DNA of 64,000 nt from Entomortierella parvispora E1425 (taxonomy: Eukaryota > Fungi > Mortierellomycota), in NCBI GenBank assembly GCA_020891255.1, contig BQFW01000011.1, forward strand, positions 1,488,001 to 1,552,000, given 5' to 3'. Both the position numbers and the translations under genes were made by a program. Positions 32,376 through 47,001 of this stretch are shown in pieces (the stretch's first letter is position 1; each line of letters starts with the position of its first letter). The notes under the pieces are model-generated. The model saw only the letters and a program-made list of their open reading frames with translations, did not search any database and had not been told where the DNA came from.

Positions 32376-32414
<39 letters not shown>

Positions 32415-33737
32415 TATGACAGAGTCGTTTGGACCATGCAACAGGAGAACTACTTTTTTTTTTGATTTCATTTGAGACTTTAATAAGTGATGCAGAAGGC
32501 TATTGAAGCTACGGCTGCCGTGTCTTGTCGGTCTGTCGATGCGGGGATTGTTGTTGAGTACCTGTCCCTACTTGCACCCTTGCCAAGGGAGAAAGTTGAA
32601 AAAGAGGAGGACGAAAGGGGAAGGAAGGCAAACTCACCATGATTTCATTGCAACCAAAAGCTCGAGTCCTTGATCTAGTCCTTGATCTAGTCCTTGACCT
32701 AGTCCTTGATCTAGTCTGTGAAAAAGCACCTCCAACAACAACACCAGTTTATTTCATATTTGCATCCTGAATGACTCCTGCTCTTGATCGTCCTGTAGTC
32801 CGGTGAAAAGGATGAAAACGTTAGTAAATGAGTATGTTAGTAAGTTAGTAAAGCACCCCCAACAACAACGCCAGTTTATTTCATATATGCATCCTGATCT
32901 TGACCTAGACCTGTCAACGAAAGAAAAGAAAAGAAAAAACTGGGACAGAAGAGAGGGTGAGTACCAACCAACTTTTTCCTTTGGATCAGAGAGCGAGAAA
33001 GAGAGCAAGAGAGAAAGAGAGAGAGGTGAGGAGGCAAGAGTGCAAGTAGGTGAGAAAGGGAAGGAGAAAACGAGATCAGTGAGAGCAGATGTCCAGCAAC
33101 AGCAAAAAGGAACAAACTTGTTGTTGAGAGGCAGCGTGGTGAAAGGTGAAGGTGCCGGCGAATGTGGTGAAGGTGGGAGTGAAGGGCTGAGGAGAGTGGG
33201 AAGTGGAGAGGGGAGTGAAGGGTTGAAGAGAAGAAAAAAGCGAAAAGCGAAAAAAAAGGCGAGCACCTTTTGTGCCGCGCAACTTTTGGCCCAGCAAGAG
33301 GAGGGTGACGACAACGCATGGGCATCTCGCTTGACTGATGACGAAGTCTCTATTCAGTTCGACGCGGATTGAATGGAAGAGAGTGGCCCGGGTCCTCGTT
33401 GTCGGGAGGAGGAAGGACATATGAAAAAGGAAAAGGAAAAGGGAAATGGATAGAACAAAGGAAAGGGAAAGGGAAAGGGAAAGGGAAAGGGAAAGGGAAG
33501 GAAACGATCACCAAGTGCGCTGATTGGTTGCTTGGATGAAGGGTTGGAAAGACGTTGAAAGCACATGTAGAAAGTGCGGCTGATCGACATTTCAGAGCAT
33601 GGAGAGAGGTCAAGGGATAGAGGGACAGAGTTGTGGTCATCGCCCTCACCGTCATCATCATCATCATCGTCACTATCACTATCACCATGAAGGAAGGGAG
33701 GAGGAGCAGAAAAAGAGAGAATGAAAAAGAGAGAGAA
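32281..33737. repeat. Left arm of a ~1.45-kb inverted repeat (giant palindrome)
   Basis: Reverse complement of 33976-35431. The core is near-identical; the outer ~50 bp and inner ~40 bp are more diverged. Confidence 0.95.
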
Positions 33738-33975
33738 CACAAGTGGAGAGTGGAAACATTTACATGGTGACCATGTCCCTCTCCCTTTCTCTCTCCGGCC
33801 CTTCAACTTCTTTCGCTCTTGGAAAGCCTCACAGCGATGAGGGATAGAGGAGTACCACTGTAACTGTGTTGTTGCCATCATCATGGTCATTCTCATCAAG
33901 ATGAAGGAGGGAAAGCCGGGTGGAAAAGACAAAGAGGCATTTGCACAAGGACCATATCCACTTCTTTTTTTTCAT

Positions 33976-35305
33976 TTCTCTCTCTTTTTATTCTCTCTTT
34001 TTCTGTTCCTCCGCCCTTCCTTCATGGTGATAGTGATAGTGACGATGATGATGATGATGACGGTGAGGGCGATGACCACAACTCTGTCCCTCTATCCCTT
34101 GACCTCTCTCCATGCTCTGAAATGTCGATCAGCCGCACTTTCTACATGTGCTTTCAACGTCTTTCCAACCCTTCATCCAAGCAACCAATCAGCGCACTTG
34201 GTGATCGTTTCCTTCCCTTTCCCTTTCCCTTTCCCTTTCCCTTTCCCTTTCCCTTTCCTTTGTTCTATCCATTTCCCTTTTCCTTTTCCTTTTTCATATG
34301 TCCTTCCTCCTCCCGACAACGAGGACCCGGGCCACTCTCTTCCATTCAATCCGCGTCGAACTGAATAGAGACTTCGTCATCAGTCAAGCGAGATGCCCAT
34401 GCGTTGTCGTCACCCTCCTCTTGCTGGGCCAAAAGTTGCGCGGCACAAAAGGTGCTCGCCTTTTTTTTCGCTTTTCGCTTTTTTCTTCTCTTCAACCCTT
34501 CACTCCCCTCTCCACTTCCCACTCTCCTCAGCCCTTCACTCCCACCTTCACCACATTCGCCGGCACCTTCACCTTTCACCACGCTGCCTCTCAACAACAA
34601 GTTTGTTCCTTTTTGCTGTTGCTGGACATCTGCTCTCACTGATCTCGTTTTCTCCTTCCCTTTCTCACCTACTTGCACTCTTGCCTCCTCACCTCTCTCT
34701 CTTTCTCTCTTGCTCTCTTTCTCGCTCTCTGATCCAAAGGAAAAAGTTGGTTGGTACTCACCCTCTCTTCTGTCCCAGTTTTTTCTTTTTCTTTTCTTTC
34801 GTTGACAGGTCTAGGTCAAGATCAGGATGCATATATGAAATAAACTGGCGTTGTTGTTGGGGGTGCTTTACTAACTTACTAACATACTCATTTACTAACG
34901 TTTTCATCCTTTTCACCGGACTACAGGACGATCAAGAGCAGGAGTCATTCAGGATGCAAATATGAAATAAACTGGTGTTGTTGTTGGAGGTGCTTTTTCA
35001 CAGACTAGATCAAGGACTAGGTCAAGGACTAGATCAAGGACTAGATCAAGGACTCGAGCTTTTGGTTGCAATGAAATCATGGTGAGTTTGCCTTCCTTCC
35101 CCTTTCGTCCTCCTCTTTTTCAACTTTCTCCCTTGGCAAGGGTGCAAGTAGGGACAGGTACTCAACAACAATCCCCGCATCGACAGACCGACAAGACACG
35201 GCAGCCGTAGCTTCAATAGCCTTCTGCATCACTTATTAAAGTCTCAAATGAAATCAAAAAAAAAAGTAGTTCTCCTGTTGCATGGTCCAAACGACTCTGT
35301 CATAC

Positions 35306-35336
<31 letters not shown>

Positions 35337-38645: not shown

Positions 38646-40464
38646 ATGATCATGTTCATCCTCCTGGTCCTGTTCGCCATGGCCTCCAATGTTTTCGCTG
38701 ATGGTAAGAGTCATCGCCTTGTACCTTCAGCCCGCTTCTGTGGTCTCTTTCAGATGCTGTGGTCATAGTGGTGTGATCTTGATGCTGAGCGCTCTCTCTA
38801 TTTCCATGAGCTTGTCATCAAACATTATCTTCACGACATCCTGGTTCTCCTTGAAGACGCGTCAAAAAAAAAAAAAACTAAACAGACGACCCTACTCTAC
38901 CTCTACTATTATAGCCGTCTACAGTCTAATCGCTTTCCCCGCCGCTTCAGACAACTCATTTGCCGTGGAGATTGACAACAAACTGTACCCTTTGCATACG
39001 TCCAAGACTGCGTTTCCTCTGTGGTCTGGCTCGGCGGCGGATGCCTCCAGCTACCGTTACGTAGAGGTCAACAGCGAAGGCACGGTGGTCAAGAGCGAAA
39101 AGTTCACACGCAGTTTTGACCATTCAGGGGCCACCGCCACCCTCAACGAGTTTTTCGAACGCAAGACCACCATCACTAAATTACCCATCGTGAAGCAGAC
39201 CTACAAGGACGTGCGTCCTAAGGCCTCCCCAGCCTTTGACGACTCTCAGATTGCCACGATCCACCTCACCGTGGACCAAGCCGCTTTTGACAAGATGCTG
39301 GGCGAGCCCCTCGTGGAACAAAAGCTCTCGATCGGCTTTAAATTCATCAATGCCAACGTTGTCTACTCGGTCGAGAAGGCGGAAATCAAGGTCTCAGGTC
39401 ATGCCTCACGCAAGTACAACAAGGTCTCGTTAGGGATCGAGTTTGACACGACCAAGGGCGAAACGTTCTTTGACCGGCCAGCCATCAAGCTCCGAGCCGA
39501 GCGCACCGATGCCTCTATGATGTCTGAAAAGTTGTACACAGATATCCTCAACTCTGTCGGCGTCCCCACAGTCCAAGGCAGCTATGCCCGCGTTTACGTG
39601 AATGGGAAACCCCTGGGTTTCTTCTTGATGGTTGAAAACATTAAGGAGGCCTTCTTCATGAACACTGTTCATCATGGTGAAATCAAAGACGTCAAGGCCC
39701 TGGGTTCTTTGTACAAGATCAACTCGGGTAAATCGGGCACGGATCGTTGGGGCGCCTTGGGCTACATTGGCAGCCATACCACTGACTATGATCTCGGACT
39801 GTATAAAAACCAGATCCTCGGTGCCAACCCAGCGAATGACGCTATGAAACAGCTCATCACCTTTATGAAAGAACTTCATGACTGGAATCCCGCCTCTTCC
39901 GGGGGCGTGGAGTACTGGAACGAGCACCTCGACCTCCAAGGGTTCCTGCGCTCGATGGCCGTCGAGTACCTCACCGGCGCCTGGGACCTGTTTTGGTGGA
40001 GGGCCAATAACTATTTCATGTATTTCAATCCACAGCGCAAGATCTGGCAGTTCATCCCTACCGACTTTGACCACACTTTTAGCGATGGCCGTCGTCCAGG
40101 CGTTGAAACAACGTACAAGGAGTTTGGACAGACACTCCCGGGGGGTGGCAAACCCGACTTTCCTCTGGTGAACAAGGTCATCTACGGGAACAAGGAGACC
40201 AACCGGGAATTCGAGACTATCCTGCTCACCACTACCAAGAATGTCTTCAACAGCGGTGTCTTGGATGCGCGAATTGACACGTACGTGACGCAGATTCAGG
40301 AGGATGTTGCCTGGGATTACTCCCTTGACCGTTCCCATCGGCCAGGTGTGGATCCTCACTGGACTATCAAGTCCTTCCAAAAGTCGATCAATGGTCCCGA
40401 TAAAAGTTTGAAGTCCTGGATCAAGGGCCGCGCCGAATCTGTACCTCGCCAGATTCCCTCATAG
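38646..40464 (+). CDS. cotH: CotH-family spore-coat protein kinase / invasin-like protein (535 aa)
   Basis: join(38646..38703,38915..40464) = 1608 nt. Signal peptide MIMFILLVLFAMASNVFA, then AVYSLIAFP. CotH motifs IKLRAERTDASMMSEK, YARVYVNGKPLGFFLMVE, EYLTGAWD and FIPTDFDHTF. Confidence 0.9.
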
Positions 40465-41544
40465 ATAGAAGATGCCTTCCTAATAATTGTGAGCAAGAGA
40501 ACATTGAAGCATTGAAGGATGAAATACCTCTCTTGCTACCCGCTTTCATTAAAGTGAAGTCCAATTCAGCATTTTCTACCACGGCCCTCGTTTTTATCCC
40601 GCTGTCACTGCCGACACATCTACACCGACTGCAGTCGTCATTGCAATGCAGTCCGTTGGACCTGCATCGACATCTCCTAAAACCATGCCAAAAACTGGTG
40701 CGTCGTCTACGCGTCCTTTCGTAACAAGCCAGTCGGAAACATCTACTTTGTCAAAGGCTATGGAGACAGCAACCGCGCTAGCTTCAGCAACTGGACATGG
40801 AAAAAGAAGGCAAGAATCTACTGCTGGTGTCGACTGGGCACAGGAGAGCGTGCGCGCGAGCAAAGATTCCAGATGGCGCTTGTTTTTTCCCAGGGACAGC
40901 AGCTTGTGCTTCGTAGATCTTTTTTTTTTCTTTGTCTCGTTTTCTACTCATCCGTCCTTTCGTCGACATCCCCTTTCTTCTTTCCTTCCTTCCATCCCTC
41001 TGGCCATGTTCTTGAGAACCAATCTCATCAATCAAAAATTAGCTACCGTGTGGACAGCCGGGAGGGTTGCTGTCCTTGATCGCAGCGCGTCCAAAAGAAC
41101 GCGTGTCTTTGACCTTTGCTGCAGTTGACTGCCGCATGTTCCACAAGAATCCGCAACAAAAAAATCTCAATTTGGATCAATTGTTGTTCGCTTGCAAAGT
41201 TTCGTTGCTTCATGTATTTCTGGTTGTAGTCTATGTTCGTATAACTGAGGGTATCGTTATATTCTTGTGATGGAAACCTTGGTTACGATTGAAACAAATC
41301 CTTAAGCCACGGCGGAGGGAGCTGCGATCAAAGGATTTCGTCTTGGGGAGGTTGCTGACAAGCCGCCTTGAAACAGATATAAAATAGAAGAACTCAGTAA
41401 ACTCGGTACAGCTGAACTGACGTCGCAACCTGCATTTAATCCAAAAAAAAAAAAAAAAAAAAAAAAAACATGACATAGAATAAAGCAAAAACCTACAGTC
41501 CAGATACCGATTCGGCTGGTAGACCAGCCCTAGGAGTGACCAAC

Positions 41545-43458
41545 CTATTTTTTGCTGGAAAATTGATTGACCAGAGAGGAAGAGAGGAAGAGAGGAATAA
41601 GGTCATCATGTTAGTTACAATCCTGATACAATCCTGCAATTGCAAATGCCATGTCTTCATTTTTATGAGCAATTAGTAGGCTTGTCTTACGTGCTGATTG
41701 GGAAGAACAGAAACACCAAGGAGAAATGGTGGCGATGTTAGTTCCAACCTTGCAGTTGTCATGTCGTCGTCGTCATGAGCAATTGGTAGGCTTGTCTTAC
41801 GCGCTGATGAAGAAGAACAGAAACGCCAAGGATAAATACAGGTGGCCATGTTAGTTCCAATCTTGCAATTACTATGTCTTCGTCGTTATGTGCAATTAGT
41901 AGGCTTGTCTTACATGCTGATGAAGAAGAACAGAAGCACCAGAGAGAAATACAGGTGGCCGTGTTAGTTCCAATGTTGCAATTGTCATGTCTTCGTCGTT
42001 ATGAGCAATTAGCAGGCTTGTCTTACATGCTGATTGAGAAGAACAGAGACGGCAAGGAGAAATAGAGGTGGTAATGTTAGCTCCAATGTTGCGATTGCTA
42101 TGCCTTCATCGTTCTGAGCAATTACCAAGCTAGACTTACGCGCTGATTAAGAAGAACAGAACGCCCGGGAGAAATGGTGGCGATGTTAGTTCCAATCTTA
42201 CAATTGTCATGTCTTCGTCGTTATGGGCAATTAGTAAACTTGACATACTCGCTGATTGAGATAAACGGAAACACCAAGGAGAAATATAGGTGGTACTGTT
42301 AGCTCCAATGTTGCGATTGCTATGTCTTCGTCGTTCTGAGCAATTGGCAAGCTAGACTTACGCGCTGATGAAGAAGAACAGAAACGCCCAGGAGAAATAC
42401 AGGTGTCCATGTTAGTTCCAATCTTCCAATTGTCATGTCTTCGTCGTTACGAGCAATTAATAGCTTGTCTTACGAGCTGATCAAGAAGAACAGAAACGCC
42501 CGGGAGAAATACAGCTTGCCATGTTAGTTCCAATCTTACAATTGTCATGTCTTCATTTTTATGAGCAATTAGTAGGCTTGTCTTACACGCTGATTGGGAA
42601 GAACAGAAACACCAAGGAGAAATGGTGGCGACGTTAGTTCCAATGTTGCAGTTGTCATGTCATCATCGTTATGAGCAATTAGCAAGCTAGACTTACGCGC
42701 TGATTAAGAAGAAAGAAACGCCCGGGAGAAATGGTGGCGACGTTAGTTCCAATGTTGCAGTTGTCATGTCATCATCGTTATGAGCAATTGGTAGGCTTGT
42801 CTTACGCGCTGGTGAAGAACAGAAACACCAGGGAGAAATGGTGGCAATGTTAGTTCCAATGTTGCAATTGTCATGTCTTCGTCGTTATGAGCATTTAGTA
42901 GGCCTGTCTTACGTGCTGATTAAGAAGAACAGAAGCGCCCGGGAGAAATACAGCTTTCCATGTTAGTTCCAAGGTTGCAATTGTCATATCCTCGTCGTTA
43001 TAAGCAATTAGTAGGCTTGTCTTACAGGCTGATTAAGAAGAACAGAGACGGCAAGGAGAAATATAGGTGTAATGTTAGCTCCAATTCTGCGATTGCTATG
43101 TCTTCGTCGTTCTGAGCAATTAGCAAGCTAGACTTACGCGCTGATTAAGAAGAAAGAAACGCCCGGGAGAAATACAGGATGCCATGTTAGTTCTAATCTT
43201 ACAATTATCATGTCTTCGTCGTTATGGGCAATTAGCAAACTTGACATACTCGCTGATTGAGAAGAACAGAAGCACCAGAGAGAAATACAGGTGGCCACGT
43301 TAGTTCCAATGTTGCGATTGTCATGTTTTTAATCGACAGTCGGTGTTCATCAAGAGGCACCTGTAGTCTTGCGCTTTTCTATTCTATTGAACTTACGTTG
43401 GAGCAGCAATGGCGACACCTAGAAAGGCAACAAGGACAAGAAGGAATTCGATTTTCAT
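41545..43458 (-). CDS. Secreted 38-aa peptide gene assembled from fifteen 3-nt micro-exons
   Basis: Exon 1 is 43458..43397 (MKIEFLLVLVAFLGVAIAAP + AC). Micro-exons start (plus-strand low coordinate) at 43250, 43138, 43026, 42913, 42806, 42697, 42587, 42474, 42362, 42249, 42140, 42027, 41914, 41801 and 41691. The terminal exon is 41554..41545 (C AAA AAA TAG). All 16 introns have a GTAAG/GTATGT donor, a CTAAC branch site and a CAG acceptor. Predicted product MKIEFLLVLVAFLGVAIAAPTDALTAAVSADAIIATKK. Splicing is inferred from signals only. Confidence 0.8.
41555..43330 (-). repeat. Tandem array of ~107-113-bp units, each one intron plus one 3-nt micro-exon
   Basis: Recurring plus-strand blocks ATGTTAGTTCCAAT, TGTCATGTCTTCGTCGTTATGAGCAATT, CTTAC-NNN-CTGAT and GAAGAACAGAA; units differ by scattered substitutions and small indels. 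Confidence 0.97.
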
Positions 43459-43924
43459 TGTAAGGTGGTTGGAGCTTGAGTTTGTTTGAAGTAGTTTGAA
43501 CAAGGTCGAGATGGGGGGAAAGGTTTGGATCAAGCGACGGTCATGGAACAAAGAAAACGGTGGTATTTAAAGGAGTCAGAGAAAAGAAAATATCAGGGAT
43601 CAAAACTGGCATTGTTTTTCAGGAGATGATTAAAGGGGTTGCCCTTACTGTCTGGGAGGGGGCACTCAAGGTCAGATCACAGTCGTGCACTTTTACTCAG
43701 TTGCGAATTTCAGCTCGCGGCAGCAAGTTGTTTTTCTTTCTTGTCAGAGAATGGTTGACGACAACTGCTGGCTGTGGAGAGCAAGAACTCGATTTTAGAG
43801 CGTTGGAGTGTGCATCTGAATCACTGGAGATGGCTGGCAAGAGTGCGCGTTGTATGTCTCTGTGAGTCTTCATTACGCCTTGCCGAGTTCTGACCGTCAT
43901 CCGCTCAAAGCAAACGTGCCCCTG

Positions 43925-44050
43925 GCATCTCTCCTCAATAATAATAAAAAAAAAGTGGGGAGGGGGAAGAGGGACAATAGGAAGACTGGCATCTCTCAAT
44001 AATAAAAAAAAAGTGGGGAGAGGGAAGAGGGACAATAGGAAGACTGGCAT
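43925..44050. repeat. Local ~60-bp tandem duplication
   Basis: GGCATCTCTC...AATAATAAAAAAAAAGTGGGG...GGGAAGAGGGACAATAGGAAGACT occurs twice, followed by a third GGCATC start. Confidence 0.85.
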
Positions 44051-45849
44051 CCCTTTTCATCTTCATCATGTACAGTACACAGTGCACGTCAAGACACGTC
44101 TTCTGCATGATTCCTTCTGACCAAGAGGGAGAGCAGGATGCATGACTGGAAGGCGGCTTTTGGTTGTGTATCAACGGTACACCAAAAAAAAAAAAAAAAA
44201 AAAAATGGCGCCACCCGTCGCCGATGGTGATGAGAATGGTCCTCCTCCTCACCTCCATTTTCTTTCTTTGCTCCTGCTCATGCTCCGCTTCAATGGTTGT
44301 CATCGCTGACTCGTACTTCTGTCCTTTTATCTTTATAGGCTTCGCTTTGTGAATTCTACTCTTGATGATGCTGGTTGCAAAAAAGATAGGTGAGGTAGAT
44401 CAACGCCTCGAGTTTCCCGACCAATGCACATTTTTCCCCTGAAAAAAATGGGGAAAAGTGGCTGCGTGCTGATAATGGGACAGGACAGCACGGTGATGAC
44501 AAGGATATGGACGACCTGTCTTGGGTGCTAGACCTCAATGACTATACCCCACTCTCGACAACGAAAGTGAATTGTGAGGAGGCTCTTCATACGCAACCGC
44601 CTGCTCACGCGTGCCTGCATGTCTATCAGGGTGCAGGAGGGAGTTGATCGAGCTCACAAAGAATGCAGAGAGCTTGACCTGGGAGACTGAGGATATTGAT
44701 GTACAGGTGTCGGGCGATCTGGGTTCAGATTCCAAGAGGGTGACCATTTCGGCGCCAAACGTCTACATCCTCACTCCTTTCGTTGAGAGGGCATCGAGTG
44801 TCGAGTCGCTCACACAGAACGGGCTCTTAGGACCTTTGAGTTCAAAGTTGCAATCCTTCATGGAGGAGGTGACAGGGTTGGAGGAACTTTGTCAGCTGCG
44901 CTCTGTGCCGCTGGAGGACAGTCACCTCAAGTCGATGACAGGCAACATCCATGATAACTCAACATAGGTTAGACATGTTGGTGATTGGCGATCTGTTCCC
45001 CACCAGCACGTCTGGTGCTGCGCCAAGACGTTGACCTTCCAGGAGCGTGCATCTTTGAGGCGTTTGTTGAAACGACGTTGATGGCAGTTGGGGGCCAGCC
45101 ACTGGTGCACCCGATGACGGCTAAGAGCCTCACCGAGTAAAAATAACGCGAATGGTCAGCTTGAAATTCTGGTAAACCTCCAGTTCCTGTGGTTCGAGCC
45201 AAGAGGGGCGTCAATGAAGAACATGAGGGGTACCAGACATCATGTTTGGTATTCACCATTGCGTCAGGTCTCACCCTTCTTTCTGGAATGGGGGCGATGA
45301 GGACTCCCGATGTCCGCACACGTTATCGCGGTCCCCGAACTGCAGCGGATGCGCCTGAACTGGCCTCTGCTGGAAGATGTCCCGAATTGACCCACTTCCT
45401 CCGGATGCGGGTATATTGTCCATCTTTCGATCCGACGCTGCCGTTGAATGGGTGCTTGCCCATCCACGACGGATCGGATGAAGTCATCAAGAGTAATGAC
45501 CATCGCTCTAGTACCGCCAGCTGAGAACGTGCCGTCGATAGCCATCTTCCGGAGTAGGGCAGCTTTGTATTTGTATCGTAGTAGTTTGCAGTCAATATTC
45601 TCGATTGATGTTGAGAGAAGGGGTGGGTCTTCGAGAAGGCATCCTACGTCTACGGAACTTATCCGATATATTCTTTTTTGTGTTCAAACTGAGTTAGAAT
45701 GGCGTCAGGAACCGTGCTCAATTGCGAGGAGTTGCACAGCCAGCGCAGTCCTTCGTCCGTCCATCCATCCATGCACCCTTCTCATTCATTCATTCTCCAC
45801 TCCGCACTCCCTTCTTCCCCTCAACCTTCCTTCCTCATTCTTGTACATC

Positions 45850-47001
45850 ATGGGCATCCTTCCAACTTCTGATCGCTTCCCATTGCTCATTGTGCTCAAC
45901 CCCCATTCAGGGTTGAAGCAGGGCCACCATGTCCTCGAGACCATCGTCAAGCCCGCGCTCAGCCAAGCCAACCAACCCTTCCGCGTGATCGAGTCCACGG
46001 CTCAGGGCCACGCCCAATCCTACTTTTTCGACAATATCAAACCTATCCTCATCGACCTGGTCCAGTCCCTCTCCTCCGTCCAAGGGACCGGCGACCACGC
46101 CTCCATCCAACACCCCACCTCGGCCAAGCTCCAGATCATGGTTCTCGGAGGCGACGGCACCGTACACGAGATTGCAAACGGGATCCTGCGCGGCCTGGAA
46201 GGCTCCGAGTTTATCTCGGACCAGTTCCGACCCAGGGTTGAGTTCTCGGTCATCCCCACCGGGACCGGCAACGCCCTTTCGACCTCATTGGGAGTCCAGT
46301 CCGCTCAAGACGCCGTCGATCGCTTCCTGAAGGGTCACTCGGTCCCCCTTCAGTTGATGTCAGTGTCGACCTTGGATCCAGTCGCGAAGGGTCCGGAGGG
46401 GGAGGGGCAGTGGAAGGTGCATGTGTACACGATGGTGGTCAACAGTTTTGGATTGCATTGCGCGACCGTGTACGACTCGGAGGAGTTCAGGCACCTGGGC
46501 AATGACCGGTTCCGGCAGGCGGCCATGAAAAATATCGAGCATTTGAAACAATACCCCGCCACGGTCACGCTCAAGGGCACCGTTCAGCAGTACGATCGGT
46601 CGACGCAGTCGTTCGTGAAGGCCTCCACAACATCCATGACGACCTTGTCCGGTCCGTTCACTTATTTTCTGATCACGAAACAGGCCTCGCTCGAGCCGGG
46701 CTTCACGCCCACCCCGCGAGCAAGCACCTCGGACGAATGGATGGACGTGCTCGCTGTCACGAACGTGGGCCAGGCCGAGATCATGGAAATGTTTGGCGCC
46801 ACCGCCACGGGCGAGCATATCCAGCAGGAGAAGGTGCAGTATTTCAAGACAAAGATCTTGGAGCTGGAGATCCCTGCAGAGGAACAAGGCAGACTCTGTA
46901 TCGACGGAGAATTTTTGACCCTCCAAGGTGGACCCCAAGGCAAAGTCCGGTTTGAGGTGGTGGAGGATCCCAACATTCAGATCTTTGGCGTTTACGCGTA
47001 A
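45850..47001 (+). CDS. Diacylglycerol kinase catalytic domain / sphingosine kinase-like lipid kinase (383 aa)
   Basis: Motifs LIVLNPHSG, VLGGDGTVHEIANG, VIPTGTGNALSTSLG and LCIDGE. ATG 45850 is chosen because the upstream part of the track ORF looks non-coding. Confidence 0.88.
   Translation: MGILPTSDRFPLLIVLNPHSGLKQGHHVLETIVKPALSQANQPFRVIESTAQGHAQSYFFDNIKPILIDLVQSLSSVQGTGDHASIQHPTSAKLQIMVLGGDGTVHEIANGILRGLEGSEFISDQFRPRVEFSVIPTGTGNALSTSLGVQSAQDAVDRFLKGHSVPLQLMSVSTLDPVAKGPEGEGQWKVHVYTMVVNSFGLHCATVYDSEEFRHLGNDRFRQAAMKNIEHLKQYPATVTLKGTVQQYDRSTQSFVKASTTSMTTLSGPFTYFLITKQASLEPGFTPTPRASTSDEWMDVLAVTNVGQAEIMEMFGATATGEHIQQEKVQYFKTKILELEIPAEEQGRLCIDGEFLTLQGGPQGKVRFEVVEDPNIQIFGVYA

Follow-up and report, generated by a model that had tools for sequence, protein, structure and literature searches.

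Tandem introns three nucleotides apart at an unannotated locus of Entomortierella parvispora: a candidate member of a family of secreted-peptide genes

The DNA analysed here, which we call the window, is a stretch of 64,000 nt from Entomortierella parvispora E1425 (contig BQFW01000011.1 of assembly GCA_020891255.1, positions 1,488,001 to 1,552,000; coordinates below count from the first base of the stretch). This Mortierellaceae soil fungus was assembled from Nanopore and HiSeq reads (PMC8759367). Between a CotH-family gene and a DAGK gene, where the deposited annotation has no gene, lies a repeat array at 41640-43326 with a period of 113, 15.1 copies and 80% matches (Tandem Repeats Finder). 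Since the assembly is Nanopore-based, a collapsed or artefactual array is unlikely. The minus strand of the array contains exactly 15 CAG|NNN|GTA(A/T)G sites, each reading as a splice acceptor and a splice donor with a spacer between them, and the first base of the spacer is C in 15/15. The gap is always 3 nt, and zero-length AG|GT sites are absent. A pattern of three units (TCAGNNNGTAAG three times at unit spacing) has six matches in the window against 0.00 expected from shuffles, and within the window the repeat unit is confined to the array, where its copies are strictly tandem. We think it probable, at about 0.58, that this is an unannotated member of a multi-copy family of peptide genes, each consisting of a signal-peptide exon, a run of tandemly duplicated spliceosomal introns 3 nt apart and a tiny exon with the stop codon.

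All parts of this putative gene lie on the minus strand. A TATA-like TTTAAATA (43564..43571), about 106-113 nt upstream of the ATG, reads as a candidate promoter element. Exon 1 (43397..43458, 62 nt) comprises 20 codons from the ATG plus 2 nt and encodes MKIEFLLVLVAFLGVAIAAP followed by AC. Its product is likely signal-peptide-like, with cleavage at AIA|AP, as judged by eye from the n/h/c layout and the -3/-1 Ala rule. Intron 1 (43253..43396, 144 nt) runs from GTAAGT via CTAAC to CAG, and its 3' two-thirds are homologous to the repeat unit. Then come the 15 micro-exons: CGA (43252-43250), CGC (43140-43138), CCT (43028-43026), CAC (42915-42913), CGC (42808-42806), CGC (42699-42697), CGT (42589-42587), CTC (42476-42474), CGC (42364-42362), CGA (42251-42249), CGC (42142-42140), CAT (42029-42027), CAT (41916-41914), CGC (41803-41801) and CAC (41693-41691). 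The interval 41691-43252, where a preliminary description had placed the cassette, thus runs exactly from the last base of micro-exon 15 to the first base of micro-exon 1. The 14 tandemly duplicated introns between the micro-exons are 104-110 nt long; each begins with a GTA(A/T)G donor and ends in a CAG acceptor, with a pyrimidine tract and, about 45 nt before the acceptor, a CTAAC branch site. The last intron (41555..41690, 136 nt) is unit-like in its 5' half, while its 3' half is unique, with a CT-rich tract and a CAG acceptor. The terminal exon reads CAAAAAATAG from 41554 onward, beginning with C; its coding part (41545..41554, C AAA AAA TAG) completes a Thr codon, adds Lys-Lys and stops. 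Further downstream is a conserved 3' element (41237..41372) containing AAGGATTTGTTTCAA, which presumably belongs to the 3' untranslated region (UTR). If frame 0 is set at the terminal exon's first base, 41231-41554 is also open for 107 codons, through a T26 run; this frame is not the one used by phase-2 splicing and is probably due to chance (about 0.6% for random sequence).

Exon 1 is 62 nt long, so every intron is in phase 2, and all 15 micro-exons as well as the terminal exon begin with C, as first described. If the locus is transcribed, removal of all 16 introns would leave an open reading frame (ORF) of 117 nt for a pre-peptide of 38 residues (MKIEFLLVLVAFLGVAIAAPTDALTAAVSADAIIATKK), in which the full-inclusion insert between exon 1 and the terminal exon is 45 nt (CGACGCCCT...CAC). 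About 20 residues would remain after signal cleavage, and the predicted peptide sequence is APTDALTAAVSADAIIATKK. The product predicted when all micro-exons are skipped ends in ...APTKK followed by the stop. We enumerated all 32,768 (2^15) inclusion patterns by brute force: every one is in frame, has a single terminal stop and leaves the neighbouring residues unchanged. The products are 23-38 residues long and 12,026 of them are distinct. The earlier arithmetic therefore holds in full: skipping any subset deletes whole residues only, NNC codons never create an internal stop in any pattern, and up to 2^15 patterns give a smaller number of distinct peptides. Retention of any of the 16 introns, by comparison, leads to a premature stop, which is immediate in 14/16, because the GTAAG donor reads NNG TAA in phase 2, and follows after nine codons in the 2/16 that have GTATG donors. 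The stop-proof and frame-proof character of the cassette is real, and it is an arithmetic consequence of phase 2 together with a pyrimidine as first base. It keeps expansion, contraction and skipping of the array in frame, and we regard it as a by-product, through which such arrays become tolerable and evolvable, rather than as a demonstrated selected device for regulated combinatorial splicing.

Are the units maintained as introns? We aligned the 14 core units, whose pairwise identity is 75-93%, and scored parsimony steps per column on a tree derived from the intron columns. The 13 splice-signal columns (GTAAG, CTAAC and CAG) show one step in total, from GTAAG to GTATG, against a mean of 1.16 steps for each of the other intron columns, and random sets of 13 other columns were equally conserved in 5e-6 of draws. 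Such conservation speaks well for selection on each copy to stay an intron, acting either here or in the arrays from which the units were copied. An intron-hosted RNA of the snoRNA type or a structured intron was also considered and discarded, since the array introns have no match in Rfam and show neither a conserved fold (-1.7 kcal/mol) nor covariation.

Relatives of the gene exist elsewhere in the same genome, and one of them provides a spliced junction. A search with the array itself returned no RNA run, and with a 10-kb query three sequencing runs labelled "DNA?" were obtained (X1, X2 and X3), the contigs of which we mapped on 40000-45900. In X1, which is DNA of the strain, the array is fragmented, with contigs about 150 nt long, and 135 of the 229 contigs mapped are only 90-99% identical to the locus. 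Depth is about 4.7x in the bin with exon 1 and the sequence just upstream (43349-43545) and about 5.8x in the bin with the 3' element (41182-41378), which indicates several close paralogues in the genome; for the 3' element, a depth of about 5-6x is found in both DNA runs, X1 and X3. At 90-99% identity, DNA and RNA contigs of paralogues match exon 1, the units and the 3' element, and the locus belongs to a multi-copy family. Run X2 comes from the same sample as X1, has TruSeq adapters at contig ends and covers genes only, which fits the single RNA library of the genome paper (PMC8759367). Two of its contigs matter here. Record 10 (318 nt, depth 30) joins 40 nt like exon 1 (43457-43418, 90% identity), 177 other letters and 33 nt like 41310-41278, and is the mRNA of a paralogue. 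Record 11 (165 nt, depth 3.3) consists of 100 nt of intron-like sequence with the first C of the unit, two further letters and 36 nt like the terminal exon from 41554. It is RNA of a paralogue in which the donor of a 3-nt unit is joined exactly to the acceptor of the terminal exon with the upstream intron retained. The upstream intron is still present in this molecule, so intron removal need not go strictly 5' to 3'.

How special is the first C? On the unit tree exon base 1 shows 0 steps, but so do 51/110 intron columns (46%), and its invariance alone is therefore uninformative. At this position T would be synonymous and no less stop-proof, and the design hence gives no reason to expect C in particular. 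Codon bias was tried as the cause and rejected, as third-position C amounts to only 35% in neighbouring ORFs and cannot give 16/16; common descent can account for it. With a homologous array that varies at this base (below), the proposal that the invariant C reflects selection on the design is not supported. Exon bases 2 and 3, on the other side, are the fastest columns of the unit: they show 6 and 4 steps, whereas no intron column exceeds 4. Their context is CGCG, and other CpG columns show 0-4 steps. The consensus exon CGC is found in 6/15 units and 5/9 departures from it are CpG transitions (CAC twice, CAT twice and CGT once), so that CpG decay accounts for much of the variation at these two bases, if not clearly for all of it. 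Read as a codon the consensus unit gives Ala (GC+C), CpG transitions convert it to Thr, Val and Ile, and the Ala/Thr/Ile/Asp-rich peptide resembles poly-alanine in decay. Exon bases 1 and 2 together form a CpG, at which four independent G>A and zero C>T changes are seen (about 0.06, one-sided), a weak hint at constraint on C, which lends no support to a selected design as long as T would serve equally.

These numbers bear on a further interpretation of the cassette, in which the phase-2, C-first layout has been selected so that skipping of micro-exons, regulated or stochastic, yields a library of up to 12,026 in-frame peptides for surface display, signalling or antagonism. The enumeration is in its favour, with all 2^15 patterns in frame and devoid of internal stops, and so are the near-identical donors and acceptors, which make cross-pairing mechanistically easy, the expected escape of skipped forms from nonsense-mediated decay, while retained introns stop at once, and, as a weak hint, the G>A asymmetry at the exon CpG. 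However, the constancy of C is equalled by nearly half of the intron columns, CpG decay of poly-Ala explains the composition of the peptide, and the E. parvispora copy is not detectably expressed and is missing from X3 (below). In fungi, moreover, intron definition is the main mode of splicing and exons are seldom skipped. We therefore consider a selected library distinctly doubtful. Alternative splicing of codon-sized micro-exons does have a fungal precedent in the work of Iotti et al. (2012; Fungal Biol 116:261), as it is cited in Dyrka et al. (2014; PMC4986451), Bidard et al. (2013; PMC3689799) and a 2023 review (PMC10197012), which makes the combinatorial idea plausible and not new in principle.

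Homologous arrays are also found in a metagenome. Metagenome contigs scanned for three consecutive TCAGNNNGTAAG sites at unit spacing gave at least 120 loci, most of which we set aside as ordinary satellites with a constant spacer (TCA, TAA or CTG). Only four turned out to be intron arrays, in which the triplets vary: L022, L066 and L121, homologous to the E. parvispora array and all from metagenome Ga0302182, and the unrelated L051. The best of three blastn matches between L022 and the E. parvispora array has 68.5% identity over 143 nt. In the three homologues the terminal exon begins C TAA, so that the stop follows straight after the array in the same C-plus-stop layout, and all three carry the 3' element with AAGGATTTGTTTCAA. 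The flanking ORFs of the Ga0302182 contigs include none usable for taxonomic placement. Conservation of the first C in orthologous arrays had been proposed as a test of the design. In L022 and L066 (18 units together) it is mostly kept, with C in 83%, T twice and A once; 55% of their intron columns are at least as conserved, so C is a typical column there. In L121 (22 units), on the contrary, the first base is G in 11, C in 7, A in 3 and T in 1, and conservation within the unit is lowest at the three exon columns. The free variation named beforehand as speaking against the design is thus seen in one of the relatives. It is not a clean refutation, since the contigs of the relatives lack the first exon, from which the phase would be read, and a phase-0 array would be skip-proof with no fixed first base.

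Exon bases 2 and 3 are again the least conserved columns in L022 and L066; their conservation is 39% and 33%, whereas the intron columns average 80%. That these bases are the least constrained in every array examined could mean that the peptide is incidental, and that what matters is splicing itself or its products, through lariats, spliceosome loading or regulation by the 3' element. The 3' element, which in distant members of the family is no less conserved than the coding parts, would be compatible with such a non-coding role. But the ATG and the signal-peptide exon are kept and common to the paralogues, a stop directly follows the array in all relatives, and the introns have neither a conserved structure nor an Rfam match, so we hold a purely non-coding function to be very improbable.

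The 3' element deserves a description of its own. It lies 170-300 nt past the stop and is found at about 1700-1800 in L022, at about 3000-3100 in L121 and also in L066. In one frame all four loci read ..RIC(F/Y)(K/N)..NQ.. with stops at a similar place, and 8/14 changes between L022 and L066 are at third positions. Either a short conserved ORF or an element of the UTR would fit. The fourth intron array, L051 (Ga0105053_10108926, minus strand, offsets 29-1668 from the 5' end of that strand), comes from another metagenome and is GC-rich, with CTCAC branch sites, TTTAG/TCAG acceptors and variable 3-nt exons (GTG GCT GCG CCC CTG GGT ...) between at least 17 tandem introns, each about 92 nt long. 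As it is unrelated and has the same layout, the architecture recurs outside the E. parvispora family.

Several results weigh against a functional gene at this particular locus. No contig of the RNA run X2 comes from the array locus at about 100% identity, though neighbouring genes are covered, and the RNA contigs examined contain no spliced example of the acceptor side of a 3-nt exon. A protein search with the 38-residue peptide (XX-padded) gave no candidate and no protein sharing words with it, and an exact look-up of the full-inclusion and skip-all peptides in a protein collection found neither. The pattern at exon bases 2 and 3 fits plain neutrality with CpG hypermutability and hence is no proof of coding. 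The array copy is also strain-specific. A 17-kb DNA contig of X3, another sample under the same species label and about 92% identical, connects 40492 with 45674 through 140 other letters, which means that the 5.2-kb gene-poor segment 40493-45673 is absent there and that its presence differs between samples. Given that a relative at 78% identity also has no array upstream of DAGK, the array copy could be young or inert. This absence at the orthologous site comes from synteny on the DAGK side (L124-L126); on the CotH side no array is seen in Podila clonocystis (L001) or Linnemannia zychae (L002), but there the flanks are not collinear and the comparison is uninformative. An ORF scan of the rest of the 5.2-kb segment gave nothing convincing, and no NACHT or ANK ORF. 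A mobile element carrying the locus was considered as well and rejected, as there are no terminal inverted or direct repeats around 40300-46000.

It could be argued from this that the locus is an inert, unexpressed and recently amplified satellite, derived from the intron-plus-codon unit of a family member and situated within a strain-specific gene-poor insertion, whose splice signals are intact because of its youth or through gene conversion. The silent RNA run, the absence of the segment from X3 and from the relative, the lack of convincing ORFs in the rest of it and the likeness of the peptide to decaying poly-Ala all agree with this explanation, as do block duplications inside the array, in which units 2-3 and 11-12 are 90-93% identical. 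It has difficulty with the signal columns, where units that are only 75-93% identical have accumulated a single, function-preserving change (5e-6), and with the intact state of the ATG exon, of the stop-bearing terminal exon and of the conserved 3' element. Moreover, one RNA library of mycelium grown on one medium is a thin sample of expression (PMC8759367). We regard an inert copy as unlikely.

In the explanation that we prefer, an unannotated member of a family of peptide genes, a donor and the acceptor preceding it are separated by 3 nt and cannot both be occupied, so introns would be removed one at a time. The founder unit would have been CAG|CGC|GTAAG in phase 2. The array may have grown from it by unequal crossing-over, both of the 113-bp unit and of blocks of three to four units, with each new copy adding one Ala (GC+C). 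The C at the first base would simply be inherited from the founder, and Thr, Val and Ile would derive mainly from CpG transitions in CGCG. One may go further and imagine that tandem intron arrays in hidden genes of Mortierellaceae generate variants of peptide length and sequence, with crossing-over changing the product by one residue per step, and noisy or regulated pairing between interchangeable splice sites providing a ladder of secreted forms, always in frame; this we consider improbable. That such variable secreted peptides act on other microbes, including the Burkholderia-related endobacteria carried by the host strain, is pure speculation.

Other features of the surroundings can be noted briefly. 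The stretch 43940-44054, upstream of the array gene, contains a tandem duplication of a 58-bp unit (AATAATAAAAAAAAAGTGGGGAG...) with 96-98% identity, and RNA-like contigs at low depth over 43826-43994 and 44305-45196 point to an unannotated transcript adjoining the gene. The deposited genome annotates the CotH-family ORF (38689-40464) with 535 aa; in a protein search its best named matches are 77% identical and from other genera, with no self-match among the matches listed, unlike the DAGK neighbour, for which the search returned its own protein. Further away, 32377-35334 contains mirror-image tandem repeats, in which the following pairs face each other: AGTCCTTGATCT repeated four times at 32665-32716 and its reverse complement at 35003-35054, a T37 run (32377) and an A29 run (35306), and an AAAAGG and a TTCCCT repeat. 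This suggests a large inverted repeat.

If the family is spliced as drawn, it would be an extreme test case for the mechanics of the spliceosome, with donor and acceptor recognition overlapping on consecutive 3-nt exons, and a clean example of a coding sequence built codon by codon through intron duplication. It would also represent a class of secreted-peptide genes that is invisible to gene finders, and the E1425 annotation is indeed empty at the locus. Phase 2 with a pyrimidine as first base offers an evolvability argument, which could account for the persistence and length variation of the arrays even without a regulated library. The practical value would lie in the genome annotation of early-diverging fungi and in mapping of RNA-seq reads with micro-exons taken into account.

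How does this architecture compare with known systems? A literature search found no paper linking micro-exons with Mortierella. One exon as one codon, shuffled by splicing, is already in print for fungi, and a Mortierellomycota family of tiny secreted-peptide genes that consist wholly of tandem intron-plus-codon units appears to be undescribed. The closest likeness is the nank family of Tuber melanosporum, a fungal gene family in which 3-bp exons follow one another by the tens, according to the papers citing Iotti et al. (2012), and their alternative splicing is proposed and reported as a mechanism of diversification. Here 15 consecutive 3-nt spacers, the putative exons, lie between canonical acceptors and donors. 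The nank genes are described in those papers as encoding large intracellular NLR-type (NACHT-ANK) receptors of an ascomycete, with micro-exons varying one region. The E. parvispora gene would in contrast encode a secreted pre-peptide of about 38 residues in a member of Mortierellomycota, with the whole mature product in 3-nt exons and introns that are tandem copies of one unit.

The micro-exon genes (MEGs) of Schistosoma are similar in having a signal-peptide exon, symmetric exons (3-81 bp, in multiples of 3), a terminal exon, secreted products and in-frame skipping (DeMarco et al. 2010, PMC2909574; PMC10526429). They differ in their exons, mostly 6-36 nt, in their non-repetitive introns of up to 5 kb and in belonging to animals, with exon definition, and there is no homology. 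The E. parvispora exons are uniformly 3 nt and the introns 104-144 nt, 14 of them being tandem duplicates of about 110 nt. At ratchet points, as in Drosophila Ubx, zero-length exons serve to remove one long intron and nothing is left in the mRNA. The likeness is that an acceptor is followed almost at once by a donor, which requires stepwise splicing, in that the donor is used only once the upstream intron is gone or else independently of it; in E. parvispora, however, 3 nt would remain at each step and together form the coding sequence. Finally, introner-like elements in fungi (PMC4457414) also create new spliceosomal introns as copies carrying their own splice signals, but these are dispersed into unrelated genes, while the E. 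parvispora copies lie head-to-tail in what is probably one gene, each with one codon.

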